A stretch of 64,000 nt of DNA, taken from assembly GCA_010909165.1 (NCBI GenBank), contig VJWM01000272.1:1-64000 (forward strand), given 5' to 3'. A model generated the notes under the pieces. It had not been told where the DNA came from, did no database searches, and saw only the letters and a program-made list of their open reading frames with translations. The stretch comes from Anthoceros angustus. Lineage: Eukaryota; Plantae; Anthocerotophyta. Of the stretch, positions 3,259 through 48,997 are shown in pieces. The translations under genes and the position numbers were made by a program. The first letter of the stretch is position 1; every line of letters starts with the position of its first letter.

Positions 3259-3750
3259 ATAATCTTCTGTTTGTGGCAGCACTTAAGGCTTGTGCCAGTG
3301 CAGAAGATCTGACATCAGGCAGACAGGTCCATTCCGATGTCCTGAGTAGTGTGCTTGAGCCTGATGTGTTTGTTGGGAGCTGCCTGGGGAAATGTATGCA
3401 AGATGTGGGAGGTTGGATGATGCTCGCACAATCTTTGACAAGTTGGACTCGAGAAACGTGGTCACATGGAATACGGTGCTTGGAGGGTATGCTCAGGGTG
3501 GGCGTGGGCAAGAAGCCCTTGCGCTCTATGCAAGTATGCAAGAGGAGGGAATCCACCTGCCTGACCATGTCACGTTTTGTGCCTCCTCAAAGCATGTGCT
3601 AGCAGTGGAACACGACACCAGGAAGGCAGCTTCATTCACAAATACAGGAAGCAGGTGTCGGATCTGAGGTGATGGTGGGGAGCTGCCTCATAGATATGTA
3701 TGCAAGATGTGGAAGCTTGGATGATGCCCGGACTGCCTTTGACAACATGA
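3259..3750 (+). pseudogene. PPR1 internal fragment (PLS-class PPR)
   Basis: LFVAALKACASAED, MYARCGRLDDARTIFDKLDSRNVVTWN. Near-identical to 4940-5430. Confidence 0.85.
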
Positions 3751-20545: not shown

Positions 20546-20935
20546 ATTTATAACAGAATTTACACCGGTTCATAAGTCCTAAATACTTAACTAAAGTATT
20601 TAATTGTGGTTAATAGAACCCCAGATATAATACCAGAGTTAATATACTATGGTCACTTAACCTCAGTATAATGACTATGATTAGCCTATACAATATGATC
20701 GTATAAAATACTTATATACTATACGTAGGAATATATACATCTAAATATATACACTTTGAGACAATTACAATACAGATTATTAAGGGGTATTTACAATAGT
20801 CATTCTACCGTTGTAGATATTTTCATTCTACAGGTGTTTCATGGAAAAATGGAAACCATTGGAAACACATGGAATGGTGTTCCCCCAAAATGCAAATTAC
20901 ATTCATGGAAATGAATTCCATGTGTTTATGGAAAA

Positions 20936-23900: not shown

Positions 23901-24640
23901 GACATGTATGGCAAGTGCTCCAGCATGGTGGATGCGCGGAAGGTGTTCGACGCCATTGCCACTAACGACATCGTCGCATGGAACGCGTTGCTGTTAGGGT
24001 ACGCGAAGCAAGGGCAGAGCGAGGCTGTGTTCCAATTGTTGGAGAGGATGAAGCAGGAGGAATCCATCCCAACGACATCACCTTCCTCGGCGTGCTCATG
24101 GTATGCAGTCATGTCGGCCTGATGGACACCGGCCAGAAGTTCTTGGATGCCATGAGCAGAGATTACGGCATAGATCCCTCGATCCAGCACCTCAACTGCA
24201 TGGTGGATCTCCTCGGCCGCGCAGGCCGCATCCACCAAGCCATGGCCATGGTCCGCAGCATGCCCTTCCCGGCTGACATGTCCGTGTGGCGGAGCATCCT
24301 CAGCGCCTGCCAGAAGTGGCGAGCCGTGGAGCTCGGAAGGCGGGCCTTCGAATGCGCTGTTCGGCTGGATGCACGAGACGCTGCGCCGTACGTCTTCATG
24401 GCCAACATCTATCTTGCTGCCGGCATGCCGGCCATGGCGGATAAGGTTCAGGCACGGCGTGCGATGGCGCAGGCGTGGAAGGAGCCGGGGCGCAGCTGGT
24501 GGATGGACGGGACCGGAAGGTGCATGTTTTCTGGTGGCGGATGCTGGACATCCCGAGAGCGAGGGCATCTACGCCAAATTAGACGACATTGTTGCCTCTC
24601 TTCGCCGAAACCTGATTTCGTGTAGAAACTTTTCCTTCAG
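20936..24640 (+). CDS. PPR2 copy 1, PLS-class E+ PPR protein (with internal duplication)
   Basis: ORFs 20936-22255, 22498-23898, 23859-24122 and 23978-24625 give P-L-S triplets. These are followed by HLNCMVDLLGRAG, VWRSILSAC, PYVFMANIY, EPGRSWW and E+ HPESEGIYAKL. No DYW domain is seen. Confidence 0.92.
21010..23041 (+). repeat. ~1016-bp tandem duplication inside PPR2 copy 1
   Basis: gctgctgctgttgtggtcaatgatgcaagac occurs at ~21008 and ~22025. The duplication is absent from copy 2 (46166-48885). Confidence 0.92.
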
Positions 24641-24769
24641 TGCTTCTCCGTTCGTGACGAAAGGAGGTCACGGAAGGAGAAGCATCAAACGGCATAGTTT
24701 CTTCCCGCCTCCTTCGAGTTCTTCTTTTCGTCCTCTTTGGCTGTCGGAGCTTTCGTCGAGGTGCTGGCT

Positions 24770-24949
24770 ATGGCGGCGGAGGAAGGAAGGCGCGGCCGGG
24801 GTGCTGCTGGCGGTGCGGGTGAGCGAGCACCTGGAGGAGGCGCTGGAGAGCAGGTACGCGCTGCACCGGCTGTACGCGGTGCCATTGAGGAGGCGGAGCG
24901 GGCGGAGTGGCTTGGCGCCATCGCTCCGGCGGTGCGCGCGGTGGCTGGG
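24770..24949 (+). pseudogene. 5' fragment of glyoxylate/hydroxypyruvate reductase-like (HPR2/HPPR family) gene
   Basis: MAAEEG..PGVLLAVRVSEHLEEALESRYALHRLY..AVRAVAG resembles the HPPR N-terminus (GVLMxxPMSxYLExELxKRFxLxRxW..IRAVVG, recalled). Frameshifted, and it ends at the LRR junction. Confidence 0.6.
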
Positions 24950-27267
24950 ATGGGCTGGACGACGAGATGTTTAAAGACCTGATTCAATCCCTGTCTACCA
25001 ACACCACAGGCTGGAGCACAACTCCATCAAGGGCACCTCATGGGAAAAGCAAGGCAAGGGCGAAGGTTTGGTGAAAGTGTTGAGAGGCATTCCGAGTGCA
25101 GCCGCAGCTGCGTGCGTTGCTCGCAGACTTGGAGTCCGACTCGGCAACGCGGCAGGAACTGCCATCTGTGGATTTGTGGGGAAGCTACCTTAATTGCGAT
25201 TGCCAGGACGGTGAATGTCAACACCGCGAGGAGTGGCACTGGGCGGTGCGCTTGCGCCTGCTCACAGCCATGGGCAGATGCCGTACGCTCAGGAAGATTC
25301 AACTCAATCCTCTGTGGAAGAGGGTCACAGCGTGAGGCAGGACGAGTCGGTCGCGCTGCTCTCAGGCTTGCAACACAACCTTGTGCTGGAGGAGCTGAAT
25401 CTGTTTGGCTACAAGGGTTTTGGGACGGCAGCAGCCTGCCTGGAGGCACTGAGTGCCGTCATCCACAGAACTCACCGCTAATTGGCCTTCCTCGGTCTGC
25501 AATCTGTGGGATTGACTCCAAAAGGCCTGGGTGCCATCGCTGCAGCCCTTGGACGCAATGTCAGCTCTTCAGTGCTGTCCAGATTGTCTCTGTGTGGGAA
25601 CGACATCAGGAATGCTGTCGGGGCGCAACACTTGGCCGACATCCTTACCACGTCGCCCAAGCTGCGCAATGTCTGGATGAGCAACATTGGCATGGACGAG
25701 GAAGGAGCCGTGGTGATTGCGCAGGCCCTGGCGCATACCACTACACTGGCTGGGCTTAGAATCGGAGATCCTGCGCCCCGGAATCCAAACCGGCCGCGCC
25801 CATGTTCCTCGTTCCATTGCTCCAAGCTTTGGTGTGGCACACCCTGGCGGATCCTCCAACTGCTGTTTCTGGCAATCACTCCATCACACGGCTTGTCCTT
25901 GAGTGTCCGGGAGGCCAGGAGGCTGTGGAGCCGGGGTTGGGAGAAGCCCTGGCTCAGGTGCTTCGCACCAACCGGGCTCTGAAAGACCTCACACTATCCA
26001 GCTTCTTCGTCACACGCGGATTGGGAGCTCTGCGGGAAAACAGCAGCATCACCAAACTCCTGGTGTTCCACTCGCGGCAGTCGGAGGATGATGACATGGA
26101 TCCCAACCTGACCGCCATCCTGGATGAGTGCAAGACTGTTGAGGAGGTGCAGATCCGGTTTGACAAGCCGTTTGGTCCGTCCAGCTTCACCAAGGCGTTT
26201 TTCCAAGGGTTGCTTCAGAAAAACCGCAACATCAACAGGCTGGTGTTGGATGGCTGGGATGGGCTGGACGACGAGATGTTTGAAGACCTGATTCAATCCC
26301 TGTCTACCAACACCAACACCCACCTCAGGCTGGATCACATCTCCATCAAGGGCACCTCATGGGAAAAGCAAGGCAGGGGCGAACGTCTGGAGAAAGCGTT
26401 GGGAGCTGCGCGAGTGCAGCCGCAGCTGCGTGCGTTGCTCGCAGACTTGGAGTCCGAGTCGCCAGTGCTGCAAGAACTCCCATCTGTGGATTTGTGGGAA
26501 GCTATTTCGATTGCCTTTGCCAGGAGGCCTACAGGAGTGTGAACACCGGGGCAGTGGCAGTGGTACGTACGCCTGCGCCTGCTCACAGCTATCGGCAAAT
26601 GCCGGTCGCTGAGGAAGATTCATCTGAATCCTCCGGGAGGATGGGCACTTACAGCGTGAGGGAGGTAGAGGCGCTGGCGCTGCTATCTGGCTTGCAACAC
26701 AACCTTGTGCTGGAGGAGCTTAATTTGCTTGGCTACGTGGGCTTTGGGACGGGACCCTGCCTGCAGGCATTGACTGGCGTCATGGAGATGCTATTTCTCA
26801 TTGGACTTGCTGGGTCTGCAATATCTGGGATTGAGTGCAGAAGAACTGGGTGTCATCGCTGCAGCCCTTGGACGCAACCGCAGCTCAGTGCTGTCCAGAT
26901 TGTCTCTTTGTGGGAACGATATCGGGAATGATGTCGGGGCGCAACATTTGGCCGACATCCTGAGGAATTCGATCGCCCTCCGCAGTCTCTGGATGAGCAA
27001 TATTGGCATGGACGAGGAAGGAGCCGTGCTGATTGCAGAGGCCCTGACGAGTACCACCACCCTGATCCGTCTCAGAATCGGAGACCCTGCGCCCCGGAAT
27101 CCGAAGCAGCCGGCGCCCATGTTCATTGGTCCAATTCTCGAAGCTTAGGTATGGCACACGCCGGATTTGGAGAATCCCCAGGAGGCCAGCAGGCCGTGGA
27201 GCCGGGACTGGGAGAAGCCCTGGCTCGGGTGCTGCGCACCAACCGTGCTCTCACTGACCTCAGACTT
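24950..27267 (+). CDS. TRN1-like LRR fragment copy B (module tail + ~2 modules, truncated)
   Basis: Module anchors at 25093 and 26411. ORFs 25482-25982, 25802-26542 and 26801-27148. Confidence 0.88.
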
Positions 27268-27719: not shown

Positions 27720-28920
27720 GGGTACACAGCACAGCAAGGGAGGTAAACCACGTGAAGAGGAACATCCGAGTAAGGAGTAAGGCCGTTGAGGTCCTGGACC
27801 TTCTGGTGCAGCCAGGGTGGTATGTACACGTCCGCATCTTTCTTCCATCAGGTCATCAAGAGGTGCATTGCACACAAAGATCTGGGTGCTGGCAGGGGTG
27901 TGCATACCCTGATTGTCAGAAGTGGGTATGTGGCAGCAGATTCTTGGCTAATCACGTCATCGCGTGTATGCTGCCTATGGGAGGTTGGAGGATGCGTTGC
28001 AGGTTTTGAATGGATTGGCTGCTCCCAATGCTTATTCGTGGTCCTCCAGAGTTGAGGCACATGTTGACAATGGACAGGCCAGGCAGGCAATCGAGATCTA
28101 TTTGAGGATGGAACAGTCATCCCTATGTTGGCAGCTAATCTTCTGTTTGTGGCAGCACTTAAGGCTTGTGCCAGTGCAGAAGATCTGACATCAGGCAGAC
28201 AGGTCCATTCCGATGTCCTGAGTAGTGTGCTTGAGCCTGATGTGTTTGTTGGGAGCTGCCTGGTGGAAATGTATGCAAGATGTGGGAGGTTGGATGATGC
28301 TCGCACAATCTTTGACAAGTTGGACTCGAGAAACGTGGTCACATGGAATACGGTGCTTGGAGGGTATGCTCAGGGTGGGCGTGGGCAAGAAGCCCTTGCG
28401 CTCTATGCAAGTATGCAAGAGGAGGAATCCACCTGCCTGACCATGTCACGTTTTGTGCCTCCTCAAAGCATGTGCTAGCAGTGGAACACGACACCAGGAA
28501 GGCAGCTTCATTCACAAATACAGGAAGCAGGTGTCGGATCTGAGGTGATGGTGGGAGCTGCCTCATAGATATGTATGCAAGATGTGGAAGCTTGGATGAT
28601 GCCCGGACTGCCTTTGACAACATGACCAGAAGAAATGTGGTGACCTGGAACGTGATGCTCGCAAGATATGCTGATGGTGGGCTAGGTGAAGAAGCCCTGT
28701 CTCTTTATGCAACTATGCAACAGGAGGGCGTTACTTCAGCAGATCACGTAACTTTGTGTGCCTTCTGAAAGCATGTAAAAGCATCAGGGCATTGGAGCAG
28801 GGAAGGCAGCTACATGACCAGGTTCAGGAGATGGGCTGCAAGTTGACGTGGTCATTTCAGCTGCCTGGTGGACATGAATGCAAAGTGTGGGAGCTGAGAG
28901 GATGCCCGCAGGGTGTGACT
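27720..28920 (+). CDS. PPR1 second copy (multiple frameshifts)
   Basis: ORFs 27964-28188, 28125-28478, 28571-28768 and 28756-29028 match 4560-5735. Confidence 0.85.
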
Positions 28921-30715
28921 GCCATTGCTTCTGGGAAGCTACGTGCATCCACGACTTGCTCCAAAGACAGCTCACCTTGGGAGCATCACGTGGCAGAGGA
29001 ATATACCTGTTCTACAAAGCAGTCTTAGTGAGATGAAAGAGCATCGCTTGACGGGGTCAAGAGGAACGTGCCTCATGTTCTGAAGTTCTGGAGAGCATCA
29101 GACAGTGTACGGATTGGGGCTGGACATCTCGCTTCCTTTCACGGAAGAGCCATCTTCATGGACGAAAGAGAGAGTGCAGCGCTCCTGAGGCTGACAGCCA
29201 CTCACAAGGCATCCGACAAAGCACAGAAAAATGTCGTCCGAAACCACTGGTGTCAGGAATGCCTTGTCGTGCAAAGTCCACAGTGTAGACAGGTTGGGAA
29301 CAAGTAGCTAGAGGCGCCTTTGCAGGCGTGCAGAAGTTGCTCCACTGCATGCTTCTCCGCGCCGCTGGCCAGCACTGGCCAGCAGAAGTGGATTCGAATC
29401 TCCCAATCACACTTGCACGCTTTTCGTTGCAACTTGCAAGAGCCCACATTGATCCATATAAGATAATTGGGATGAGCAGGAAGTGGAGTGGGACGCCGTT
29501 TGCTCTGCTTGCCTTTTCTTGCAAGTCCTCCTGAGAAGGTGGGACGTTGTTGTGGAGGTTGGGCTATGGCTGATCCATCTCTTCCTGCCGGCGCCGCTGG
29601 TGGACCTGCTCGAGATCCTCGAGTCCCGCTCGCCGCAGCTGCGTGCGTTGCTTGCAGAGCTGGAGTCCGACTCGCCAAAGCGGCAGGAACTGCCATCTGT
29701 TGATTCGTGGGAAGCTACTTCAATTGCGACTGCCAGGACGGGGAATGTCACCACCGCGAGGAGTGGCACTGGGCGGTGCGCTTGCGTCTGCTCACCGCTA
29801 TCGGCAGATGCCCGCAGGTGTGACTGCCATTGCTTCTGGGAAGCTACGTGCATCCACGACTTGCTCCAAAGACAGCTCACCTTGGGAGCATCACGTGGCA
29901 GAGGAATATACCTGTTCTACAAAGCAGTCTTAGTGAGATGAAAGAGCATCGCTTGACGGGTCAAGAGGAACGTGCCTCATGTTCTGAAGTTCTGGAGAGC
30001 ATCAGACAGTGTACGGATTGGGGCTGGACATCTCGCTTCCTTTCACGGAAGAGCCATCTTCATGGACGAAAGAGAGAGAGTGCAGCGCTCCTGAGGCTGA
30101 CAGCCACTCACAAGGCATCCGACAAAGCACAGAAAAATGTCGTCCGAAACCACTGGTGTCAGGAATGCCTTGTCGTGCAAGTCCACAGTGTAGACAGGTT
30201 GGGAACAAGTAGCTAGAGGCGCCTTTGCAGGCGTGCAGAAGTTGCTCCACTGCATGCTTCTCCGCGCCGCTGGCCAGCACTGGCCAGCAGAAGTGGATTC
30301 GAATCTCCCAATCACACTTGCACGCTTTTCGTTGCAACTTGCAAGAGCCCATTGATCCATATAAGATAATTGGGATGAGCAGGAAGTGGAGTGGGACGCC
30401 GTTTGCTCTGCTTGCCTTTTCTTGCAAGTCCTCCTGAGAAGGTGGGACGTTGTTGTGGAGGTTGGGCTATGGCTGATCCATCTCTTCCTGCCGGCGCCGC
30501 TGGTGGACCTGCTCGAGATCCTCGAGTCCCGCTCGCCGCAGCTGCGTGCGTTGCTTGCAGAGCTGGAGTCCGACTCGCCAAAGCGGCAGGAACTGCCATC
30601 TGTTGATTCGTGGGAAGCTACTTCAATTGCGACTGCCAGGACGGGGAATGTCACCACCGCGAGGAGTGGCACTGGGCGGTGCGCTTGCGTCTGCTCACCG
30701 CTATCGGCAGATGCC
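28907..30715 (+). repeat. ~0.9-kb tandem duplication (PPR1 end, spacer, start of ROCO gene)
   Basis: The ROCO start at 29566 breaks off at ~29810 (cggcagatgcc|cgcagg) and restarts from the PPR1 3' end. The shared sequence is gatgcc. Confidence 0.9.
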
Positions 30716-33700
30716 GTACGCTCAGGAAGATTCAACTGAATCCTCTGTGGAAGAGGGTCACAGCGTGAGGCGGGACGAGGCGTTGGCGCTCTTTTCAGGC
30801 TTGCAACACAACCTTGTGCTGGAGGAGCTGAATCTGTTTGGCTACAAGGGGTTTGGGACGGCAGCGTGCCTCCAGGCACTGAGTGCTGTCATCGACAGAA
30901 CTCATCGCTCACTGGACTTCCTCGGTCTGCAATCTGTGGGATTGAGTGCAGAAGGACTGGGTGCCATCGCTGCAGCCCTTGGACGCAATGTCAGCTCTTC
31001 AGTGCTGTCCAGATTGTCTCTGTGTGGGAACGACATCAGGAATGCTGTCGGGGCGCAACACTTGGCCGACATCCTTACCAAGTCGCCCAAGCTGCGCAAT
31101 CTCTGGATGAGCACCATAGGCATGGACGAGGAAGGAGCCGTGGTGATTGCGCAGGCCCTGGCGCATACCACTACACTGGCTGGGCTTAGAATCGGAGATC
31201 CTGCGCCCCGGAATCCAAACCGGCCCGCGCCCATGTTCCTCGTTCCATTGCTCCAAGCTTTGGTGTGGCACACCCTGGCGGATCCTCCAGCTGCTGTTTC
31301 TGGCAATCACTCCATCACACGGCTTGTCCTTGAGTGTCCGGGAGGCCAGGAGGCTGTGGAGCCAGGGCTGGGAGAAGCCCTGGCTCAGGTGCTGCACCAA
31401 CCGGGCGCTGAAAGACCTCAGACTATCCAGCTTCTTCGTCACACGCGGATTGGGAGCTCTGCGGAAAACAGCAGCATCACCAAACTCCTGGTGTTCCACT
31501 CGCGGCAGTCGGAGGATGATGACATGGATCCCATCCTGACCACCATCCTGGATGAGTGCAAGACTGTTGAGGAGGTTCAGATCCGGTTTGACAAGCCCTT
31601 TGGTCCGTCCAGCTTCACCAAGGCGTTTTTCAAGGGTTGCTGCAGAAAACCGCAGCATCAACAGGCTGGTGTTGGATGGCTGGGATGGGCTGGACGACGA
31701 GATGTTTGAAGACCTGATTCAATCCCTGTCTACCAACACCCACCTCAGGCTGGATCACATCTCCATCAAGGGCACCTCATGGGAAAAGCAAGGCAGGGGC
31801 GAACGTCTGGAGAAAGCGTTGGGAGCTGCGCGAGTGCAGCCGCAGCTGCGTGCGTTGCTCGCAGACTTGGAGTCCGAGTCGCCAGTGCTGCAGGAACTCC
31901 CATCTGTGGATTTGTGGGGAAGCTATTTCGATTGCCTTTGCCAGGAGGCCTACCGGGAGTGTCAACACCGGGGGCAGTGGCAGTGGTACGTACGCCTGCG
32001 CCTGCTCACAGCTATCGGCAAATGCCGGTCGCTGAGGAAGATTCATCTGAATCCTCCGGGGAGGATGGGAACTTACAGCGTGAGGGAGGTAGAGGCGCTG
32101 GCTCTGCTATCAGGCTTGCAACACAACCTTGTGCTGGAGGAGCTGAATCTGTTTGGCTACAAGGGGTTTGGGAGGGCACCCTGCCTGCAGGCATTGACTG
32201 GCGTCATAGAGAGATGTTGTTTCTCATTGGACTTGCTGGGTCTGCAACATCTGGGATTGAGTGCAGAAGAACTGGGTGTCATCGCTGCAGCCCTTGGACG
32301 CAACCGCAGCTCAGTGCTGTGCAGATTGTCTCTTTGTGGGAACGACATCAGGAATGCTGTCGGGGCGCAACACTTGGCCGACATCCTTACCAAGTCGCCC
32401 AAGCTCCGCAATCTATGGATGAGCAACATAGGCATGGACGAGGAAGGAGCCGTGGTGATTGCACAGGCCCTGGCGCATACCACTACACTGGCTGGGCTTA
32501 GAATCGGAGATCCTGCGCCCCGGAATCCAAACCAGCCCGCGCCCATGTTCCTCGTTCCATTGCTCCAAGCTTTGGTGTGGCACACCCTGGCGGATCCTCC
32601 AGCTGCTGTTTCTGGCAATCACTCCATCACACGGCTTGTCCTCGAGTGTCCGGGAGGCCAGGAGGCTGTGGAGCCGGGGCTGGGAGAAGCCCTGGCTCAG
32701 GTGCTTCGCACCAACCGGGCTCTGAAAGACCTCACACTATCCAGCTTCTTCGTCACACGCGGATTGGGAGCTCTGCGGGAAAACAGCAGCATCACCAAAC
32801 TCCTGGTGTTCCACTCGCGGCAGTCGGAGGATGATGACATGGATCCCAACCTGACCGCCATCCTGGATGAGTGCAAGACTGTTGAGGAGGTGCAGATCCG
32901 GTTTGACAAGCCCTTTGGTCCGTCCAGCTTCACCAAGGCGTTTTTCAAGGGTTGCTGCAGAAAACCGCAGCATCAACAGGCTGGTGTTGGATGGCTGGGA
33001 TGGGCTGGACGACGAGATGTTTGAAGACCTGATTCAATCCCTGTCTACCAACACCAACACCCACCTCAGGCTGGATCACATCTCCATCAAGGGCACCTCA
33101 TGGGAAAAGCAAGGCAGGGGCGAACGTCTGGAGAAAGCGTTGGGAGCTGCGCGAGTGCAGCCAGCTGCGTGCGTTGCTCGCAGACTTGGAGTCCGAGTCG
33201 CCAGTGCTGCAAGAACTCCCATCTGTGGATTTGTGGGAAGCTATTTCGATTGCCTTTGCCAGGAGGCCTACAGGAGTGTCAACACCGGGGCAGTGGCAGT
33301 GGTACGTACGCCTGCTCACAGCTATCGGCAAATGCCGGTCGCTGAGGAAGATTCATCTGAATCCTCCGGGAGGAGGGCACTTACAGCGTGAGGGAGGTAG
33401 AGGCGCTGGCTCTGCTATCAGGCTTGCAACACAACCTTGTGCTGGAGGAGCTGGATCTGTATGGCTACAAGGGGTTTGGGACGGCAGCAGCTGCCTGCAG
33501 GCACTGAGTGCTGTCATCGACAGAACTCATCGCTCACTGGACTTGCTGGGTCTGCAATCTGGGATTGAGTGCAGAAGGACTGGGTGCCATCGCTGCAGCC
33601 CTTGGACGCAATGTCAGCTCTTCAGTGCTGTCCAGATTGTCTCTTTGTGGGAACGACATCAGGAATGCTGTCGGGGCGCAACACTTGGCCGACATCCTTA

Positions 33701-36700
33701 CCAAGTCGCCCAAGCTCCGCAATCTCTGGATGAGCAACATAGGCATGGACGAGGAAGGAGCCGTGGTGATTGCACAGGCCCTGGCGCATACCACTACACT
33801 GGCTGGGCTTAGAATCGGAGATCCTGCGCCCCGGAATCCAAACCAGCCCGCGCCCATGTTCCTCGTTCCATTGCTCCAAGCTTTGGTGTGGCACACCTGG
33901 CGGATCCTCCAGCTGCTGTTTCTGGCAATCACTCCATCACACGGCTTGTCCTTGAGTGTCCGGGAGGCCAGGAGGCTGTGGAGCCAGGGCTGGGAGAAGC
34001 CCTGGCTCAGGTGCTGCACCAACCGGGCTCTGAAAGACCTCAGACTATCCAGCTTCTTCGTCACACGCGGATTGGGAGCTCTGCGGAAAACAGCAGCATC
34101 ACCAAACTCCTGGTGTTTCACTCGCGGCAGTCGGAGGATGATGACATGGATCCCATCCTGACCACCATCCTGGATGAGTGCAAGACTGTTGAGCAGGTGC
34201 AGATCCGGTTTGACAAGCCCTTTGGTCCGTCCAGCTTCACCAAGGCGTTTTTCCAAGGGTTGCAGAAAACCGCAGCATCAACAGGCTGGTGTTGGATGGC
34301 TGGGATGGCTGGACGACGAGATGTTTGAAGACCTGATTCAATCCCTGTCCACCAACACCAACACCCTCAGGCTGGATCACATCTCCATCAAGGGCACCTC
34401 ATGGGAAAAGCAAGGCAGGGGCGAACGTCTGGAGAAAGCGTTGGGAGCTGCGCGAGTGCAGCCGCAGCTGCGTGCGTTGCTCGCAGACTTGGAGTCCGAG
34501 TCGCCAGTGCTGCAAGAACTCCCATCTGTGGATTTGTGGGAAGCTATTTCGATTGCCTTTGCCAGGAGGCCTACAGGAGTGTGAACACCGGGGCAGTGGC
34601 AGTGGTACGTACGCCTGCGCCTGCTCACAGCTATCGGCAAATGCCGGTCGCTGAGGAAGATTCATCTGAATCCTCCGGGGAGGAGGGCACTTACAGCGTG
34701 AGGGAGGTAGAGGCGCTGGCTCTGCTATCAGGCTTGCAACACAACCTTGTGCTGGAGGAGCTGGATCTGTATGGCTACAAGGGGTTTGGGACGGCAGCAG
34801 CTGCCTGCAGGCACTGAGTGCTGTCATCGACAGAACTCATCGCTCACTGGACTTCCTCGGTCTGCAATCTGTGGGATTGAGTGCAGAAGGACTGGGTGCC
34901 ATCGCTGCAGCCCTTGGACGCAATGCAGCTCAGTGCTGTCCAGATTGTCTCTGTGTGGAACGACATCAGGAATGCTGTCGGGCGCAACACTTGGCCGACA
35001 TCCTTACCAAGTCGCCCAAGCTCCGCAATCTATGGATGAGCAACATAGGCATGGACGAGGAAGGAGCCGTGGTGATTGCACAGGCCCTGGCGCATACCAC
35101 TACACTGGCTGGGCTTAGAATCGGAGATCCTGCGCCCCGGAATCCAAACCAGCCCGCGCCCATGTTCCTCGTTCCATTGCTCCAAGCTTTGGTGTGGCAC
35201 ACCCTGGCGGATCCTCCAGCTGCTGTTTCTGGCAATCACTCCATCACACGGCTTGTCCTTGAGTGTCCGGGAGGCCAGGAGGCTGTGGAGCCAGGGCTGG
35301 GAGAAGCCCTGGCTCAGGTGCTTCGCACCAACCGGGCTCTGAAAGACCTCACACTATCCAGCTTCTTCGTCACACGCGGATTGGGAGCTCTGCGGAAAAC
35401 AGCAGCATCACCAAACTCCTGGTGTTCACTCGCGGCAGTCGGAGGATGATGACATGGATCCCAACCTGACCGCCATCCTGGATGAGTGCAAGACTGTTGA
35501 GGAGGTGCAGATCCGGTTTGACAAGCCCTTTGGTCCGTCCAGCTTCACCAAGGCGTTTTTCAAGGGTTGCTGCAGAAAACCGCAGCATCAACAGGCTGGT
35601 GTTGGATGGCTGGGATGGGCTGGACGACGAGATGTTTGAAGACCTGATTCAATCCTGTCCACCAACACCAACACCCACCTCAGGCTGGATCACATCTCCA
35701 TCAAGGGCACCTCATGGGAAAAGCAAGGCAGGGGCGAACGTCTGGAGAAAGCGTTGGGAGCTGCGAGTGCAGCCGCAGCTGCGTGCGTTGCTCGCAGACT
35801 TGGAGTCCGAGTCGCCAGTGCTGCAAGAACTCCCATCTGTGGATTTGTGGGAAGCTATTTCGATTGCCTTTGCCAGGAGGCCTACAGGAGTGTCAACACC
35901 GGGGCAGTGGCAGTGGTACGTACGCCTGCGCCTGCTCACAGCTATCGGCAAATGCCGGTCGCTGAGGAAGATTCATCTGAATCCTCCGGGAGGAGGGCAC
36001 TTACAGCGTGAGGGAGGTAGAGGCGCTGGCGCTGCTATCAGGCTTGCAACACAACCTTGTGCTGGAGGAGCTGAATCTGTTGGCTACGTGGGTTGGGACG
36101 GCACCCTGCCTGCAGGCATTGACTGGCGTCATGGAGAGATGCTATTTCTCATTGGACTTGCTGGGTCTGCAACATCTGGGATTGAGTGCAGAAGGACTGG
36201 GTGTCATCGCTGCAGCCCTTGGACGCAACCGCAGCTCAGTGCTGTCCAGATTGTCTCTTTGTGGGAACGACATCGGAATGCTGTCGGGCGCAACATTTGG
36301 CCGACATCCTGAGGAATTCGATCGCCCTCCGCAATCTCTGGATGAGCAATATTGGCATGGACGAGGAAGGAGCCGTGCTGATTGCAGAGGCCCTGGCGAA
36401 TACCACCACCCTGATCCGTCTCAGAATCGGAGACCCTGCGCCCCGGAATCCGAAGCAGCCGGCGCCCATGTTCATTGGTCCAATTCTCGAAGCTTTGGTG
36501 TGGCACACGCCGGATTCGGAGAATCAGGAGGATTGTCATCCTCCTGCTTCTAGAGCCACTTCCAATCGCTCCATCAGGCTGCTTGTTCTTGAGTGCCCAG
36601 GAGGCCAGCAGGCCGTGGAGCCAGGACTGGGAGAAGCCCTGGCTCAGGTGCTGCGCACCAACCGTGCTCTCACTGACCTCAGACTTGCCAGCTTCTTCGT

Positions 36701-37119
36701 CACACGCGGATTGGAAGCGCTACCTGAAAACAGCAGCATCACCCAACTCCAAGTAAGTCACACGCGGAATTCGGAGGATGATGACATGGATCCTATGCTG
36801 ATCACGATTCTTCAGGAGTGCAAGAATGTCCAGCAGCTGCAGCTTCAGTTTTATAAGCCCTTTGGTCCATCCAACTTCTCCAAGGCGTTTTTCCAAGGGT
36901 TGCGGGATAATCGTAGCATCAAGACGCTTGTGTTGGATGACTGCGAAGGATTGGATGACTACATGTTCCAGAACTTGATGCGGTCTCTGGGACGCAACTG
37001 CAACAACGTCCTGGAGAACATTTCCATCAAGAAAACAACCTGGGAAAGCGAAGGCAAAGGAATATACATCCAGAATGCTCTCTCAAGGAACATGCGCAGA
37101 AGAAGCGCTGCTCCGCAGG
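30469..37119 (+). repeat. Tandem array of five ~1.31-kb LRR super-modules (copy C)
   Basis: Anchors at 31831, 33152, 34453 and 35764 (spacings 1321, 1301, 1311). Confidence 0.95.
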
Positions 37120-40100
37120 GTAGGTGCCCAAGCCAGTAGCTAGCTACCCTTGTCCTGATTTGTATCTACAGTCAGAACCCACAAACTCAGATGTATACTG
37201 ACCCCTTCTCACTTGTGCAGGTTCGGAAGAAGTGCCACCACCGGTCACGGCAACTGTGGCAACCTCTGATGCCGCAGCAGGTAATGAAACTACATGAATC
37301 CATGGATTTGATCCAACCACTTCCAAGCTGTTGTTGTTGTTGCAACTAGTTTGAATGCCTGTACCGAATGCACCACTTGATGCTGCTGCTGGCAGGCAGT
37401 CTGATGATTGACTGATTGGCTGTTTTGTTTTCACCACAATTTCCAGTTGCTGTTCCTGAGGAGCTCAGTGCCCTGCTTGCCGAGCTCGACTCACCTTCGC
37501 CCACACTCAGTAGTCTTCCTCGTGTGAAGCGTTTGGGCACTTGTTCAAGAGGGACGTGGAACATCCACAGGTGGAACTTGAACTGCGCATGCGCCTTATG
37601 AAGGCTATCGGAAATGCCCCACACTCAGATTCATAGATCTCGACCCTCTTGGGCGTCGAAATTACAGGGTGACGGTGGCAGAGGCGATGGCGCTGCTGGA
37701 AGGCCTGAGCTCGAATGCAATAGTGGAACGGCTGGACTTGAGTGGCTTCCTTGGTTTTGGAACAGGTGAAGTCTGCGCTGCAATCGCCGCTATCTTGCAA
37801 TCCAGCCGCACCTTGCAATTTCTGAATATGGGATACACTGGCATGACTGTCGAAGGACTGGCTTGCATTGCCCTGTACTGCGACATAATCGCAGCACTGT
37901 GCTTCGCACCTTGTATCTTTCTGGAAACACGACTGTGGGAGAAGGTGTTGGAGCTCAACACCTGGCTGATATCCTGACCAGCACTCCCGCTCTTCGCAAC
38001 CTGGGGATGTGGGATACAGGGATGGATGAGGCGGGAGCATTGATGATAGGGGATGCTCTGGCTCAGAACACCACACTTGACTGGCTGAACATAGGATTCA
38101 ATCAAGCGTGGAGGCCAAAGCAGGCAGGGATGATGGCCACGCTGTTAGCTCGAGCATTCACCCTGGCATGCTGGACGCAGACCAGGAGGCTGAAGGTGTT
38201 GCTCCCAAGCTTCCTTCTGTTAACGAGTCTGTCACACATCTCCAGCTGGAAGTATGGGGAGCAGGACAGCAGCCTGTCATCGCTGAGTTGGGAGAAGCTG
38301 TGGCCCGCATGCTGCGGTCGAACATGACTTTAAGGCATCTCGATGTATGTACCTGCTTTATAAGGCAGGGATTGGAGGGGCTGTGTGACAACAGCAGCGT
38401 TATCCGTGTGACAGTCCGACATGGTAGCTCTTGTGCTAAGGAGGACTACTGCAAGCTGATGCCAATCCTGCAGAGTTGCCAGACAGTGGAAAAGTTTACA
38501 ATTAGTTCAGGACGGTTTGGGACCTTTGGGATCATCCGACTTCCTCAAGACGATTTTCGAATGGTTGCAGGACAATCCTCGCCTCAACAAGTTGGTGTTG
38601 GATGGCTGGAAAGGGTTGGACGACCATATGTTCCAAGACCTGTTGCGGGCTCTGCAAGTGAACACCAATTTGGAGAAAATATCGTTCGAGAACACTGTGT
38701 GGAAAAGTCAGGGAAAAGGAGCTGCAGTGGATGAGGTACTACGGCAAAACAGGGAATACCGAAAAGCTCTGGCAGGGGCTCCAACAATGCCAGTGAAATC
38801 ATGTCGCCTCGTACTTTGTGGATTTCCATATGCAGGTGAGCCACGTGCTGAACCCAAAGTTTGTACATCCCCAAATGGCGTAGTTGTGGCAGACTTCACT
38901 GCAGTTGTTTCTGTCTTCTACATCTGTTTTCTTGTCTTAACGTTGTTTTCGTCTCCGGAGTGTAATCGGTGGTAAATGTTGCTGTTTCAGGAAAACCACG
39001 ATACGGAATACGTTGATGAGTACGCAAACACACGAAAACGATGTGGAGATCGAGGGTGAAACGATTTCGAAACGTATACCTCGAACTCTTGGGTTTGAGG
39101 TTGAGGTGATAAAAGATGGTCCATCCTTGAGAATAACCGTTTGGGATCTTGCAGGGCACAGGGAGTTTCATGCTCTTCACGATGTGGTCTTTCCTGCTGT
39201 GAATAGCTCCTCTCTCTTCTTGTTTGTCTATAACCCGTTCAAACTTGGTGGTAATTATTCAAGTGCGGGAATGAAGGAGAGAAAGGATTTCCGAGATGAA
39301 TTTATTTATTGGCTTAAATTTATTGCTTCCAACTCGCGGTTAGCTCAACAGGTGAAACCTTATGTTCATGTGGTGGTAACATTTGGTGACAAGCTTGAAG
39401 GTAGGATGTCTTGAAGGTTGCACGGAGGAAGTGTTGGTGATGAAGAAAAGTTCATGGCTGTTGTGGAAACATCCAATGAACCCACTTTCATCAATGGACA
39501 GAGTTGGAAAGATGTGTATGCACTACGCAGCCTCATAGAGGAAAAGCTACAACTTGTCAGCAAATTGGCCCCAATTCCCAATATTTGTGAGCAGACCCGT
39601 ATACATGTGCAAAGATGGGCTGAGGATCAACAAGGTATGCCAATCATTTCTGTTGAGAAGTTTAGTGAGTTGTTTCATAGCACATGTAAGGCGGCAATAG
39701 GGCATCCACTCATCTCGAGGATTACAAGATTTCTTAGAGACTTCATGGACAAAGAGGATAGCTGGAAAGTAGTAGCATCATATCTCAAGGATTCGGGAGA
39801 TCATATATTTCCAAATGTCACAGCTTATGGTCATCAACCTCCGATGGTTAGGAATGGGCGTTTTGGTCAGCTGATTAGTATATTTGGTGAACGGACAATA
39901 GGCAAGATTGGCTTCAAGTTCAAAATGGGTTTATCAGCAAATATGGGTTGAGTAGCCTTCTAAAATGTCTTTGAACAAGGTAGGGCTTGATGAAACCATT
40001 GTGAGCGAGGAACAATTCATCCAATTGATGCTTGAGTTGCACCTTTGCCACGAAAGCAGAGATGAGGAAGGAGAAGTGCGTTATTTTGTTCCAATATGTA

Positions 40101-41870
40101 CGTATAAAGAAGATGTATCGAGTTGATCAGTTAGTATGGCCTTCACGGTGGTAATCTTCATGATTATATCTTTATGGGTTTGCGTCTACAATGTGATGAT
40201 CAAGATTGTACATTCCTCACACCAGGATTTTTCCCTAGGTTACAGGTTTGTAACTTTTCTCAAGTTGGCTATCTTTTGTTTTATGTCCTGAAACTTCTTC
40301 TTTTGTTTTATGTCCTTGAAACTTCTTCTTTTGTTTTATTATTATTATTGATTGTTAACTAGTCTCATTGTTCCTATATATTGTAGGTACTTTTATACAC
40401 ATATTGTTTGTCAAAAGGCTGGGTTGATGAGGAAAGACCAATTGATTCAGGAATAAAATTGGAGTCTAATGTCCTTTTAATATCTGCAGAGGCACTAGAT
40501 ATCTTTGTGGAATTTAATGCTGAATTGGGTTGCTACATAGATATACTGGCCCGATCTACTCAAGGCTATTTAGAGTCCATGTCATTTTTGAAGGAACATA
40601 TTGTATCTCAGATTCGGGCATTTTGTGCTTCATATGAGGGTTGTGCAGGGGTCACACTGGTTGAAGGTGTTCTTCGACATGAATGTGGCATCCCTCACTC
40701 TATGCGACATAGGAGACACGAGTGTATCGACGATAAGCTAGTCAAAGCGGTGGCTGCTGCAAAGGACCGATGCTATGCTCACTACACGCATCTTGGAGGC
40801 TCTTGATGGCGGCAGAGCTCGACACTCATTTTAAAGGCCAACATAGAGTATGCAACGTGGTGGATGGTCATGTCATTTTGGGACAAAAGAGGACCTTGCA
40901 AGCGAGTTCCAAGGTTGAAGCTCTCAATCGTGAATAGTCTTTCTTCTTTTGTTTTATGTCCTTGTTCACATGTAGTTTTTAGCATTACACAAGCGGTGCT
41001 TTCTTGCAAACTCGATGTACTGCAGGATCAAAATCTAGCAGGAGAAAAGATGCTGAAACTTCTAGACACCTATCCCTGCAAGTAGTGCAAGCTGTGCTGA
41101 AAGAAGAGCCTATTGTTGGGAGTATTTATCCTAACCATGGTGTAGAAGGAGGAAAACGAAGAGGTTTGGCAATGATTCTGAGTATGGAAGAGGACAGACC
41201 TGGAGGAGCTGTAGACAGAGGGCGACTTGAAGCTCTTTTTGAGACTTTGGCATTTGATACTGATATATTATTGGACGGTTCTGAGAGTGTGAAAGCACGA
41301 TTTAGGAGCGTTGCCAAACTCCTACCTAGCTAAGGACGATTGCTTTCATGTTGCATCAATGCTCATGGGGGATTGAAGAAGATGGCGGCATACATTATCA
41401 TAAGTGGAGCACGGCGGAGAAGCTATATGTTGATGATGACATCTTGAAGCCCATCTGAATCCACGTGGTTGAGACAAGCCCAAGGTGTTTTGATCAATGC
41501 TTGTCGAGCCGTAGCCTTATCACAAGCGAAAGCTAAGGACTCTGAAGTTGAGAGTAGCCAAATGGTGAGCAAGAGAGCCGGAGAAGTCCGATTCACGCAT
41601 GAAGGATTGTCTCATCTTCTTCTCGACGTCATGGACAACAATCCTTTAGAGATGTTGAGAAAGGCACAAACTTTATCACAGCTTTGATGAAAGCCATCAT
41701 TCGGGGTCTCAAGAAGGGATGATGTGTGCATTTTAACATCGGTGATTGCCGAGGTCACGGAGATAGAAGTCAAGCTCCCAAGTGAAGCAGGAAGGCGCCC
41801 TGAGAAGAGATCCCAGTGTCCAGAGTTGTACTCCACACTCACCAAAAAACTTTGCTGGTCTTTACCATAA
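30469..41870 (+). CDS. TORNADO1-like LRR-Roc-COR gene copy C with downstream caspase-like domain (most complete copy; frameshifted as written)
   Basis: Five super-modules to 37119, intron/linker/intron, divergent LRR module to 38835, P-loop intron 38836-38990, Roc-COR to ~40929, candidate intron 40930-41025, caspase-like domain to TAA 41868-41870. Confidence 0.9.
41154..41870 (+). CDS. Caspase-like (peptidase C14) domain, copy C
   Basis: KRRGLAMILSMEEDRPGGAVDRGRLEALFETLAFD in one frame (ORF 41004-41333). CINAHG has its His at 41364 and NACR its Cys at 41502. 41718-41870 reads DDVCILTSVIAEVTEIEVKLPSEAGRRPEKRSQCPELYSTLTKKLCWSLP*. Confidence 0.85.
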
Positions 41871-41936
41871 GTTCACTTTTTGGCCAACGGGAATTCGGTG
41901 TGGCCATGTTCCTTCATCCGTAACCAGACTGCAATA

Positions 41937-43190
41937 CAATCATCGTTCCCAACAAGACATTGTTGGTGAAGCAAATTGCTTATAATGCGACCTCATTTGT
42001 CCTTTTCTCCTCATTTCTTGTTTAGTGGCTCGCATACAATTTGGAAGAGAAACGACTCCTTCTGTGGATGAACCTGTAGGTGAGAGCTCATGGACTTTAG
42101 GGAGGAAAGAACAAGGGAGTTGTGGAGCTGTAGCTGTACTCTTTGGTTTCAAGAAGCAAGTCCAGATGTAAGCGTTCCTCGATCGAATGACTTCTAGTCC
42201 TTTTGCATATTAGATGTGTGTTCCATCTTCTTGAGCGGCCCAGGCTGGGACAGGATGTCCCTCACTCAAATCGCGTTTGAGGCTTGCCTTTCTTTCACGA
42301 TGAGAAAACACAAAGCGCGGACAGTAGCTCACAGTAGCTGGTGCCAAACCCTCATCTCTGGTGTTAGGGTTATGACATTTTCGCTGTTGAAATCTAGATT
42401 AGGTTACTTTTCATGCATCACCGACAACACAAACATGTATGTAAATTTGTGTTGTCCTTCCAATGTGCCGGTGAGAATGTTGCGTGCCTAGGACTTTGAG
42501 CAGTTCCGCTTAACAAATGGCGAGGTCTAGGTGGGAACTTGCTTTTTGTGAACCTTCTTGGATGACACTTACTGTAGAATCATCGTTCCCAACAAGACAT
42601 TGTTGGTGAAGCAAATTGCTTCTAATGCGTCTCATTTGTCCTTTCTCCTCATTTCTTGTTTAGTGGCTCGCATACAATTTGGAAGAGAAACGACTCCGTG
42701 GATGAACTGTAGGTGAGAGCTCATGGACTTTAGGGAGGAAAGAACAAGGGAGTTATGGACAGGCATACTCTTTGGTTTCAAGAAGCAAGTCCGGATGTAA
42801 GCGTTCCTCGATCGAATGACTTCTAGTCCTTTTGCATATTAGATGTGTGTTCCATCTTCTTGGCGGCCAGTGAGACGGGATGTCCCTCACTCAAATCGCG
42901 TTTGAGGCTTGCCTTTCTTTCACGATGAGAAAACACAAAGCGCGGAGCTCATGAGTGTGCCAAACCCTCATCTCCGGTGTTAGGGCTATGACATTTTCGC
43001 TTGAAATCTAGATTAGGTTACTTTTCATGCATCACCGACAACACAAACATGTATGTAAATTTGTGTTGTCCTTCAGGTGATGTGAGAATGTTGCGTGCCT
43101 AGGACTTTGAACAATGGTTCCGCTTAACAAAGAAATGGCGAGGTCTAGGTGGGAACTTGCTCAACTTCTGGATGACACTTACATTTAGAA
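41937..43190. repeat. ~640-bp tandem duplication in the 3' flank
   Basis: aatcatcgttcccaacaagacattgttggtgaagc occurs at 41937 and 42579. Confidence 0.88.
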
Positions 43191-46165
43191 TCATTTGTGC
43201 GAATTTTAGAACTTGTTGTCACAAGATAAGGAAAAATCCACATTAGGGAGGTGCACAAAAAGGGTTGAAAACGCCAAAAGGAACCATTTAAAACAATAAA
43301 TTTATCAAAATAAATACAAAATAAGCTCCAAAAATGCCAAAATTTTAAAACAAGTGCGTGCACTTGTGCGCGCATTTGTCTCAAAAACTTGGATTTTTTT
43401 TTTTTGGACTTTTCGTATTTTTTAGATTTTTTACTTTTTTTTTCTTTGAATGAACCGTCTGGGAATGCACTAGGAGACATGAACCCTATGGGTTCATGCC
43501 CCTAAAGCTTCTTGACCCTACGTGTGCACCTAGGCCCCTTTGGTGTGCACACAAGTGCGCGCATCTTCACTTAGGGTTTTCTCTTTTCCGATTCTATTAT
43601 TGCGAATTTGCTCGAAAGAAATGTGAAAATAAGAACCAACCACATTCAACTTTTCAACTTACGGATATTTGATTATGCTTCATCAATAGTCTCTAGGGCG
43701 ACTCAAAAAGCGATTAATTTTCATTATGCCCTATGTGCCTCTGTCCGTCACGTGCGGAAATTCGTCCTTAGTGGACTTAAATAAAATTCTTCTTCTTCTT
43801 CTTCTTACATCAAAACTCCATGATTAAGCGCCCTTGGGCGGATTGGTGACCTCCGGGAAGTCCGTCTTGCATGCACCCGCCGTCTCATCTTTTCTTCCAC
43901 TCCTTTTTTTTTTTTTCCCCTTCTTCTTCTTCTTTCCATTTTGAGCTCTAGAGTTCTTTGCTTTCCTTTCCCCGAATTTTATTGAAGTCCACTAAGAACG
44001 GATTTCCTTCATGTGACTCATTTGACAGAGTTACACAGAGGGCATAATGAGAATTAACTGCTATTCTGAGTCTGGCCTTCAAACTAGTGTTGTGAAGCAT
44101 AATCAAATATTTGGCAGGTTGAAAAATTGAATATGTTGCGTTCTTATTTCCCACAATTTGTTTCAAGCAAACTCTTGCAATAATAGGGTCAAGAACAGAG
44201 AGAAAACCCCGGAGTGAAGATTGAGTTGTTGTAAGTAGATTGATAAAAGTATGCTTGACATCATCATAAATGGGATAGAGGAACACAAAGTGGTCTTCAG
44301 TCTCAACACCCCTGTTGCATAACTTGCAAATTCTGGACTCCCTTGGTGGCTTTGGACGTACCCGTCTATCAGTCTCAATTCAATTCCCGAGACGATGAGA
44401 CCCGATACGAATATGACCCGTAATCATCCTAAGCTTGAAAGACACATGGGTGCGAAGATAGAGAGAAAGCAAAGGTTTCCAGTTGGGAGCGATCTAAAAA
44501 ATTGTTTGTAGGTCTTGAGCTTAGTGGGTAAGGAGAGAGGAGACCAAGTATAGGACAAATAGGTAGTCAACAACAAATAGGTAGTCAAATATGTAGGCAT
44601 AGCTCATCAACAAAACCAAACCAACTCCTTTCTCCTTCTTACATAACGCATTACATGTGCACCTATGCTCATTCCTAAAGCCAACTCATTCAATCTCGTC
44701 ATCTAATGAGTGCTCCTCACCTTCGCATTTGTCCAAAGCCCTTTTTTTTTGCACTATGTGGCCCCGCCCAAGCGCCATGCATGATACATCCACTTGTCCT
44801 TGAAGGCCCTCGGCACAGGTGACCCAATGGCCACGATCTCCATACTCCGCACTCCAACTTCATTCCACCTCATCAATATGTAGGCCAAACAAGTTTGGAG
44901 AAGATGATCCCCATGGCGGACTACCATATTACAAGGTAAATCCAAGAGGCATGAGGTAGTGCGGTCAAAAGCAACATGAGGTAGTAGTAGTAGTGTGTAG
45001 CGCGGATCTACAAGCAAAATCCTAATATTCCAGTGAACAAATCGTACTTGAAAGTAATTGTCATGCATGAAAGAAAAGGGCCAGCAGTCACCCGGGGGAC
45101 CGTCCACGGCCACTCCGGCGAAGGCGAAGGCTAAAGTTAAGGCTTTGTATCAATGCTTGTGAGTTACGGATCCCCATCCCCGGTATGATTGGAGACAAGG
45201 ACGCTCAACCCCGACGTTCTTTTGCGGCCATGGATAGGTGCACGATTGCGGTATGCTGGTGAGGGGATGAAGTTTGCTTGGTCTTTAAGACTTTATGTAC
45301 GTCGACGTCCACACCACAGAGACAAAGGCTCAATCGTATGAAGAAGAGGAGAAGAATTTTATTCAACTCTGTTTCTTACGTCTGTATGTTTCTTACGCCT
45401 TTGTGCACAATCGCGTTTCATCCACTACCACGAATTGCGTCGTCAGATTTATTATTCACGATCAAGGGAGTCCCAAGTTGGTGATCTCCAATATTTATCT
45501 ATGGGGTATAGCCGACGCGACGGCAGCTGAGTGAGAGCCTGCTTGTCTCAGAAGAACTCAGAAGTGAGTGAAGGCTTCAGAGCCTGGGGTGCCCCAATGT
45601 CAAGTGGAAGATGACAACGTGCTAATATCTATGCACTCAACAAAGTAGTCAGGGACCTGATTCTCGTAGGAAGAAGCTCGCTACACCTCAAGTTCCCCGA
45701 AAGGGAATCACTCCCTGCAAACAGAAACGTTCACAGTTACCAGTTGCTGGACGTAAAGGACAGCATTGGCATGCAAACAAGGGACGTGGTAAGATGTGGC
45801 ATTCCACAGAAACGAACAGAGTCAAAACCAAAAACACGCGAGGCGGCAATGACTCAGATTATGGGTGGTGATCCATTAGAATTGTCGGCACGGGTTCAAG
45901 GACAATCATGAACTGGAGAGAGAGGAAGAGAACGGGAATGGGAAGGATGCCCCGGGTGACCGACGAGGTGAACTAGCGAATTGAGGTCGTGTGTGAACTT
46001 TGCATCGGTTCGTATGGCTTCTGCTTGGCGTGGCCTTGGAGAGGCATTCCATGAGGTTGACGTATCCTTGGCAAGGCATTCCACGTTTGCTCCCTGCATA
46101 TATGCTGGGATGTACGCACGGTTTTACGTTCATAGGTCAGTAGGATCCTGCGTTACCTGGCGCAG

Positions 46166-48885: not shown

Positions 48886-48997
48886 CGAAAGGAGGTCACG
48901 GAAGGAGAAGCATCAAACGGCATAGTTTCTTCCCGCCTCCTTCGAGTTCTTCTTTTCGTCCTCTTTGGCTGTCGGAGCTTTCGTCGAGGTGCTGGCT

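Follow-up and report, generated by a model that had tools for sequence, protein, structure and literature searches.

The window analysed here is a 64,000-nucleotide (nt) stretch of the Anthoceros angustus genome (contig VJWM01000272.1, positions 1-64,000, forward strand). It contains several copies of a gene predicted to combine LRR, Roc, COR and caspase-like domains. The most complete copy in the window, copy C, occupies 30469-41870 (+). Copy A (6444-18700, +) is the same gene with internal tandem duplications, as seen by self-BLAST, caspase alignment and translations; copy D (49173-54961, +) is a shortened version, and copy E (57184-59969, +) is a fragment. In copy C, an ATG is followed by five RNI-type LRR super-units of 1.31 kilobases (kb), a sixth variant unit, Roc, COR-A/COR-B and the caspase. 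A sequence-only reading of this locus had proposed the same four parts, and each of them has been found on the + strand, within limits that agree with those it gave (ATG at 30469, stop codon TAA at 41868-41870). The six exons of the gene model sum to ~10.7 kb, about 3,575 codons, which bears out the very large protein of roughly 3,500 residues that had been expected for copy C.

The LRR part of the gene model is formed by exons 1 to 3. Exon 1 (30469-37119, +) holds the ATG and the five ~1.31-kb super-units, and the array between 30.5 and 37 kb consists of GC-rich tandem repeats with a period of 1306-1320 nt, or ~438 codons per unit, whose junctions in exon 1 lie near 31648, 32963, 34268 and 35578. 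The unit at 31630-32952 stays open over its full 441 codons and resembles ribonuclease inhibitor, the NLRP1 LRR, LRRC16A and LRRC34 (phmmer against the PDB, E down to 7e-10), and its neighbours in the ESM Atlas are LRR_6 clusters. A Pfam scan of the raw open reading frames (ORFs) in the array returned no match, and Pfam recognised almost nothing on the raw stop-to-stop ORFs of copy C as a whole, the cause being frame fragmentation together with weak LRR profiles. Exon 2 (37221-37280, +) has 60 nt and phase 1 at both ends. Exon 3 (37447-38835, +) encodes the sixth, non-repeated LRR super-unit (Pfam LRR_6, E 0.003) and the first half of the P-loop, G-F-P-Y-A-G. The base composition shifts within the gene, from 57-60% GC in the LRR array (30000-37000), a value shared by the PPR genes of the window, to 42-47% in the Roc, COR and caspase parts (38000-42000). 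This shift may reflect biased gene conversion in tandem arrays or different histories of the two gene halves.

Exon 4 (38991-40245, +) encodes the remainder of Roc, with the GKTT, DLAG, TFGD and ETS motifs, and COR-A, while exon 5 (40387-40913, +) encodes COR-B up to a Y-x-H-T-W-like motif and ends ..E-F-Q-G|GT in phase 1. The Roc domain at 38941-39411 matches Pfam Roc with E 2e-5 and 25.1 bits, just below the 27-bit cut-off, in an exon from which the first half of the P-loop is missing. Its identity to TORNADO1 is 39% (tblastn, E 1e-17), and its motifs are G-F-P-Y-A-G-K-T (the P-loop, across intron 3), D-L-A-G (DxxG), T-F-G-D (TxxD) and E-T-S. When the COR ORF of copy A was compared by phmmer with 1.84 billion cluster representatives, only 104 matches were obtained, none of them more than 40% identical. 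The long relatives among them that were scanned contain Pfam Roc plus COR-A and/or COR-B. By tblastn, these COR relatives map to 38517-40870 and none extends further 3'; their LRR ends fall on 38517-38846, COR on 39400-40870 and COR-B on 40423-40869. Pfam COR gave no match at E <0.01 on the ORF pieces of the window, and neither NB-ARC nor NACHT matched any ORF piece of 30469-41870, where Roc is the sole NTPase. Based on these comparisons, the product of copy C is predicted to be a ROCO-type protein, for which GTP binding and hydrolysis and COR dimerisation would be implied by family membership.

The caspase-type C14 domain is real, judging from profile, structure-database and motif comparisons. 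The clearest profile match has been obtained in copy D, where the ORF at 54662-54952 matches Pfam Peptidase_C14 with 42.1 bits (E 1.1e-10), above the family cut-off of 21.4, and the copy C DNA is 88% identical to copy D in this stretch. The best PDB matches of the caspase stretch are caspases-4/11/3/1, with caspase-2 also among the matches; the 60 best PDB matches listed are all caspases and include no metacaspase. Likewise, 92 of 100 Atlas neighbours belong to animal caspase clusters. The first caspase strand, G-K-R-R-G-L-A-M-I-L, begins at 41151 in copy C. The His motif N-A-H-G-G is located at 41358 in copy C, 18118 in copy A and 54575 in copy D, and the Cys motif I-N-A-C-R-A at 41493, 18252 and 54713, respectively. 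In copy D the whole Cys strand, K-P-K-V-F-L-I-N-A-C-R-A, is in frame and aligns to the Cys strand of caspase-4/11. The p20/p10 order is kept and the domain forms the C-terminal end of the protein.

The S1-pocket residues are partly conserved. The Arg of D-R-P-G-G (41193) is aligned to the S1 arginine in F-R-S-G-G of caspase-2, and the Arg of S-F-R-D (41642) to the S1 arginine in S-Y-R-D of caspase-4. The caspase signature Q-A-C-x-G is N-A-C-R-A here, with Gln replaced by Asn and the final Gly by Ala. With these two replacements, the specificity or activity of this protease may differ from that of caspases. The unbroken caspase ORF pieces are 97-116 residues long. The C-terminal 59-residue piece, which we take to be similar to the C-terminus of caspase-3, gave no PDB caspase match when searched alone. 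A homologous-protein search with the 97-residue caspase ORF gave no candidate within a length window that left out full-length proteins, and the PADLOC and NCBIfam models did not match the caspase or COR pieces.

The splicing pattern has been obtained from RNA run X1 (labelled "RNA?"), which comes from the same sample as the assembly and includes this stretch. Its contigs show four GT..AG joints with depths of 525-622 and an intron depth of about zero, and X1 thus contains spliced transcripts of the LRR-Roc-COR gene family. Intron 1 (37120-37220, +; 101 nt, GT..AG) corresponds to the RNA joint 37118>37220 (cut +1) at a depth of 525, and intron 2 (37281-37446, +; 166 nt, GT..AG) to the joint 37277>37444 (cut +3). 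Exons 1, 2 and 3 splice in frame without any correction. Intron 3 (38836-38990, +) splits the P-loop and is seen as joint 38835>38990 on a 980-nt contig; at this site the RNA has one G more than the window, which places G-F-P-Y-A-G-K-T in frame. Intron 4 (40246-40386, +; 141 nt, GT..AG) is represented by the joint 40243>40385 (cut +2) at a depth of 560. The X1 contigs show the behaviour of the family and not necessarily that of copy C, because they come from several paralogs that are 90-99% identical to copy C.

One further RNA joint, 41866-42026, skips 159 nt at the stop codon. The donor at this position reads G-T-A-A-G-T in copy A and A-T-A-A-G-T in copy C, and it is this change that makes the TAA of copy C. 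In some paralogs, the transcript may therefore continue into a short additional C-terminal exon of about 15 codons, ending at 42070.

The connection between COR and the caspase is the weakest point of the gene model. The last COR exon and the first caspase strand are separated by 238 nt in copy C, 251 nt in copy A and 240 nt in copy D, all on the + strand, so the spacing of about 200-250 nt in three copies noticed by the sequence-only reading is reproduced. RNA depth (at >=94% likeness) is 743 in the last bin before 40914, falls to zero over 40914-41045 and is back by 41070, after which it is unbroken over the caspase exon (41070-41925) at a level similar to that of Roc-COR. The depth stops exactly at 40914-40915, the GT of a consensus C-A-A-G|G-T donor. 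Downstream, the AGs ending at 41025 and 41049 are acceptors from which the caspase frame is in phase with exon 5 (phase 1) without correction. Intron 5 would thus span 40914-41025 (+), the acceptor ending at 41025 or 41049, and exon 6 (41026-41870, +) would contain a short linker and the whole caspase, including the motifs at 41151, 41193, 41358, 41493 and 41642 and the TAA at 41868-41870. Very probably, then, exon 5 is spliced in phase to the caspase exon to give one fused gene; we infer this joint from depth, phase and the lack of an upstream ATG because no junction-spanning contig has been recovered.

An alternative would be two neighbouring genes instead of a fusion, with a separate caspase gene following an LRR-Roc-COR gene at a distance of about 150 nt. 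It would agree with the lack of an RNA contig or joint across 40914-41069 among the X1 contigs listed, a result that counts against the fused model, and with the COR frame, which read unspliced meets a TGA two codons beyond 40913. However, the RNA coverage breaks off exactly at the AG|GT donor, with no continuation into a 3' untranslated region, and in-phase acceptors are present. The caspase frame of copy C is open upstream to 40983, and no ATG precedes the first caspase strand in this open frame in copy C or D. Strand and spacing are also kept in the three copies. Two separate genes are accordingly considered improbable.

The copies are arranged in a ~24-kb segmental duplication that repeats along the window (self-BLAST). 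In each ~24-kb unit, the LRR-Roc-COR-caspase gene comes after a PPR gene, a small number of LRR modules and some PPR fragments. Copies A, C and D are one duplicated event and not independent evidence; they count as a single event because all of them stem from this one segmental duplication. The internal tandem duplications of copy A are at 11557-12981/12973-14389 and 16557-17300/17296-18035. In the former (11557-14389) the last LRR unit is repeated; in the latter (16557-18035) COR-B and the start of the caspase are repeated, with a short Roc-like piece, F-V-Y-N-P-F-K-F-G-G, within the linker. Copy D has two LRR units fused straight to Roc, followed by COR and a caspase that ends at 54961. It lacks the equivalent of 37223-38900 and the last ~150 nt of the caspase, and an LRR-Roc junction of the copy D type is present as a low-depth contig in X1. 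Copy E comprises the last LRR unit and Roc, breaks off within COR and has no caspase. At the 5' end of copy C, 28901-29812 and 29807-30715 form a 906-nt tandem duplication with 0 mismatches, into which the start codon and the initial ~250 nt of the gene fall. It yields a second, orphan start at 29566, which may be real or an assembly artefact.

The neighbouring genes are those of a plant. PLS-type PPR genes with E and E+ motifs are located at 20915-24971 and 46136-48900 (+) and are likely organelle RNA-editing factors; LRR super-units (1.7) stand directly 3' of them, at 24942-27176 and 49173-51864. Additional PPR fragments are found at 3198-5556 and 27929-28800. The left window edge is occupied by a lipoxygenase gene (100-1560, -; Pfam Lipoxygenase, E 1e-45 on 888-1556). 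The region 60000-64000 is GC-rich (59-63%), strongly skewed and of low complexity, with a ~1.43-kb internal repeat (61897-62583 vs 63326-64000); no gene has been recognised in it.

This setting bears on whether foreign caspase DNA, animal or microbial, has been joined to plant DNA by contamination or chimeric misassembly. The likeness of the caspase to animal caspases and the low base quality of the assembly would fit such an origin. On the other hand, the PPR and lipoxygenase genes are on the same contig, the COR-caspase junction recurs in three copies, the caspase stretch is present in both the RNA and the DNA runs of the same sample, and the Roc-COR part is closest to streptophyte proteins. 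A foreign origin is therefore regarded as highly implausible.

A further difficulty is the state of the reading frames. Several observations on the frames and their substitutions weigh against copy C as a functional gene, together with the RNA having been drawn from several paralogs. As assembled, no copy is a single open frame, and copy C needs at least 23 frame corrections. Its caspase pieces by themselves gave no Pfam C14 match, the domain being split over frames. An in-frame TGA at 39412-39414 is common to copy E (about 58835) and is not a homopolymer slip. Finally, exon divergence between copies is only slightly below intron divergence, a weak signal of selection. The behaviour of a DNA run, X3, points in the same direction and is considered below.

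The number and kind of the frame breaks are nevertheless those that single-nucleotide indel noise predicts, and we argue that most of them are assembly errors. Copy C requires at least 2.1 corrections per kb, compared with 6-9.5 in intergenic sequence and 1.2-1.8 in the neighbouring PPR gene, and 2.1 per kb equals the error rate estimated from near-identical duplicates. These duplicates are 20919-22034 vs 46163-47277, with 1 mismatch and 5 gaps, and 28901-29812 vs 29807-30715, which has 5 gaps as well. Gap events between copies are 0.7-1 times as frequent as substitutions, a proportion far higher than evolution would give. RNA contigs with 0-2 mismatches have 1-9 extra letters relative to the window and hardly ever have missing ones. 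The junctions of the LRR units are alike in all units apart from run lengths of C/CC and AAAA/AAAAA, and in the unit at 50463, where both runs are full, the frame reads through. Dense 1-nt indel errors, in most cases lost letters and frequently within homopolymers, are present in the assembly at ~2 per kb in GC-rich sequence and at a higher rate in the AT-rich 3' parts, and ORF-based readings of this genome will meet false frameshifts.

Pseudogene decay has been dropped as the cause of the frame breaks and of the 1-, 2- and 4-nt indels between copies, as the indel noise of the assembly suffices. The TAA at 41331, which appeared to be in frame and shared between copies, is also put out of frame when the C that the RNA supports after 41320 is included. 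A majority consensus of nine LRR units gave no single open frame; the units are mosaic, and the consensus, being unreliable, was not used.

The copies in the window, copy C included, might still be decaying pseudogenes in a rearranging cluster, the RNA coming from intact paralogs elsewhere in the genome. The TGA shared by copies C and E speaks for this view; it is located between the G4 and G5 motifs of Roc, in a loop where copy A is 3 nt shorter and has no stop and copy D is 7 nt shorter. The internal duplications of copy A, the truncation and deletion in copy D, the fragmentary state of copy E, the near equality of exon and intron divergence and the 90-99% identity of most RNA contigs to copy C are also consistent with it. 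X3 matches the window at four sites at which the RNA carries additional letters. It yields numerous 58-nt contigs of low depth, distinguished from one another by indels at a single place, and it looks like the noisy long reads of the same sample behind the assembly, which would not make it independent. X3 cannot separate assembly error from true sequence because it behaves like the assembly's own noisy reads.

Against decay, the number of breaks in copy C is that predicted by assembly noise, and the breaks occur at homopolymers that vary among otherwise identical repeats. In addition, 44 X1 contigs reach a likeness of 99% or more to the copy C stretch, several of them differing by extra letters only, the first three exons splice in frame as assembled, and substitutions by codon position (150/151/220) show a third-position excess, albeit a weak bias. 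Decay of all the window copies is thus a tentative alternative that appears rather unlikely, and if copy C were dead the reality of the family would be untouched because the spliced RNA would come from intact paralogs. Taking these points together, copy C is read as the most complete window member of a young, multi-copy, transcribed family that would encode an LRR-Roc-COR-caspase (C14) protein, a would-be dimerisation-gated protease, with a rough probability of 0.6.

The named relatives of the COR region are TORNADO1 (TRN1) and COR-domain proteins of Riccia, Marchantia, Ceratodon and Chara. TORNADO1 and the TRN1-like proteins of liverworts, mosses and Chara have the same order of RNI-type LRR, Roc, COR-A and COR-B and are the best sequence relatives of copy C, with 33-40% identity over COR and homology that runs through the Y-x-H-T-W motif. 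Several of them share the exon split into LRR, Roc-COR-A and COR-B. They differ from copy C at both ends of the protein. At the N-terminus, the TRN1-like proteins have one LRR block of about 500 residues, whereas copy C has six super-units of ~438 residues; at the C-terminus, they have a conserved domain of ~350 residues where copy C has the caspase.

The C-terminal domain of the TRN1-like proteins is common to TORNADO1 and 33 other relatives and has invariant C-E, Q-x-G and W-x-C motifs. Among eight related loci, it has been found in the downstream ORFs of L004-L007 by tblastn and of L001 and L003 by eye. By tblastn it has no match in the window (best E 7.8). An AlphaFold model of one example (P0014:1020-1379) has a pLDDT of 77.6, with Cys, Glu, Gln, Gly and Trp as the invariant residues. 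Foldseek found nothing in the PDB at E 0.001 or better for this domain, and the idea that it is a hidden caspase fold was rejected on this ground; it is an uncharacterised fold. Conversely, when the caspase pieces were searched by BLAST against 108 retrieved relatives and the eight related loci, none proved to have a caspase. TRN1 of Arabidopsis, which had been said to have no such protease, does end in this other domain, and all 104 COR relatives retrieved likewise have C-terminal domains other than the caspase.

Other C-terminal enzymes have been observed in the same position. The liverwort relatives P0037 (Marchantia paleacea) and P0063 (Riccia sorocarpa) have DUF676 or alpha/beta-hydrolase and thioesterase-like domains after COR. 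In bryophytes, the TORNADO1-type scaffold seems, from these domain orders, to tolerate or swap C-terminal enzymes. The homology of copy C to the TRN1-like proteins ends at the exon 5 boundary (motif near 40800), and the caspase then follows in a single exon. Because the domain switch coincides with an exon boundary and the caspase occupies one exon, the arrangement looks like a gain of the caspase by exon shuffling onto a TORNADO1-like scaffold. The exchange among a TRN1 domain, an alpha/beta-hydrolase or DUF676 domain and a caspase hints that this family may be a sensor platform and not just a developmental factor.

A mechanism can be proposed from the domain logic. Roco proteins pass through a dimer-monomer cycle via COR during GTP turnover by Roc, and forced dimerisation is what activates initiator caspases. 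Because of these two properties, a caspase placed right after COR-B could be switched by the GTPase. The LRR array would act as a ligand sensor or as a brake that keeps the protein inactive; GTP binding by Roc would alter the COR-mediated dimer state; the altered state would pair two caspase domains and activate them, as proximity does for initiator caspases; and the active protease would cut substrates that drive immunity or cell death. The sequence-only reading had combined an LRR sensor, a Roc-COR switch and a protease effector into an NLR- or apoptosome-like immune or death receptor. The domain architecture it relied on is retained in one spliced gene model, while its NLR likeness extends to the predicted logic only: the protein is not an NLR, because it has no NB-ARC or NACHT domain.

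The immune or death role itself is an inference from domain logic. The tandem duplication, the change in LRR-module copy number and the truncated copies resemble fast-evolving receptor clusters, which supports such a role but would be no proof of it. The gasdermin Pfam model gave no match in nine ORFs from the spacers 42198-45908 and 18897-19768, where indel noise fragments ORFs.

An intact, fused gene could instead act in development or trafficking as TORNADO1 does, with the caspase serving in processing or as a scaffold. TORNADO1, the closest relative with a name, is a patterning gene, and the Asn and Ala in place of the Gln and final Gly of QACxG are compatible with a specificity or activity unlike that of caspases. 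However, single-copy developmental genes do not typically show the receptor-cluster features listed above, the window has no TRN1-specific C-terminal domain, and the liverwort relatives have other enzyme domains at the same position. A developmental role is therefore thought unlikely. In the other direction, the boldest version of the receptor reading would be a land-plant single-chain "inflammasome", in which the LRR and Roc-COR parts directly activate a fused, Asp-specific, animal-type caspase gained by exon shuffling, leading to a pyroptosis-like death. This version is speculative and we consider it doubtful; if it were true, plants would possess a true caspase-based immunity.

Several known systems share parts of this design. 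The ROCO family (LRRK2, DAPK1, Dictyostelium and bacterial Roco proteins) has the same central Roc-COR, with N-terminal LRRs and a C-terminal output domain. The output domains known in this family are kinases, death domains or none. A caspase output would be new among eukaryotic ROCO proteins, and the predicted domain in copy C is the first caspase-type domain so wired in a plant that we can find; in the literature searched, Roc-COR-caspase proteins are not reported from plants or from other eukaryotes, in keeping with the earlier remark that the architecture was unfamiliar from plants. In brown algae, LRR-ROCO proteins with variable LRR exons have been proposed as immune receptors (PMC11378527). 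The LRR variation of copy C involves whole 1.31-kb modules within one exon, while that of the brown-algal proteins involves exons of a single LRR.

The animal caspases (C14A) with their apoptosome and inflammasomes have the same logic of a sensor, an NTP switch and a proximity-activated caspase. In animals, the caspase is a separate protein recruited via CARD or death folds to a STAND ATPase, whereas in copy C it is predicted to be fused in cis to Roc-COR. Unlike the animal platforms, copy C has no CARD, DED, NACHT or NB-ARC, and its whole caspase domain is in one exon. Bacterial NTPase-centred conflict systems combine an NTP switch, sensor or repeat modules, caspase-like peptidases and Roc-type AP-GTPases (Kaur et al. 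2020, PMC7159879). These systems are prokaryotic and multi-gene, while the Roc-COR found here is of streptophyte type and the caspase matches neither PADLOC nor NCBIfam models.

Plant metacaspases (C14B) belong to the same clan and to the same Pfam family, Peptidase_C14, as the copy C caspase. They are stand-alone proteins that cut after Arg or Lys, whereas the copy C caspase is nearest to animal caspases in both the PDB and the Atlas comparisons. According to textbooks and recent reviews, true caspases are missing from plants, which instead have metacaspases and unrelated proteases that show caspase-like activity (PMC9104976, PMC13272413). A transcribed plant family with a caspase-type domain would qualify this statement, and its predicted wiring in cis to a sensor and a GTP switch would make both a plant caspase-based death or immune pathway and the gating of the protease testable.

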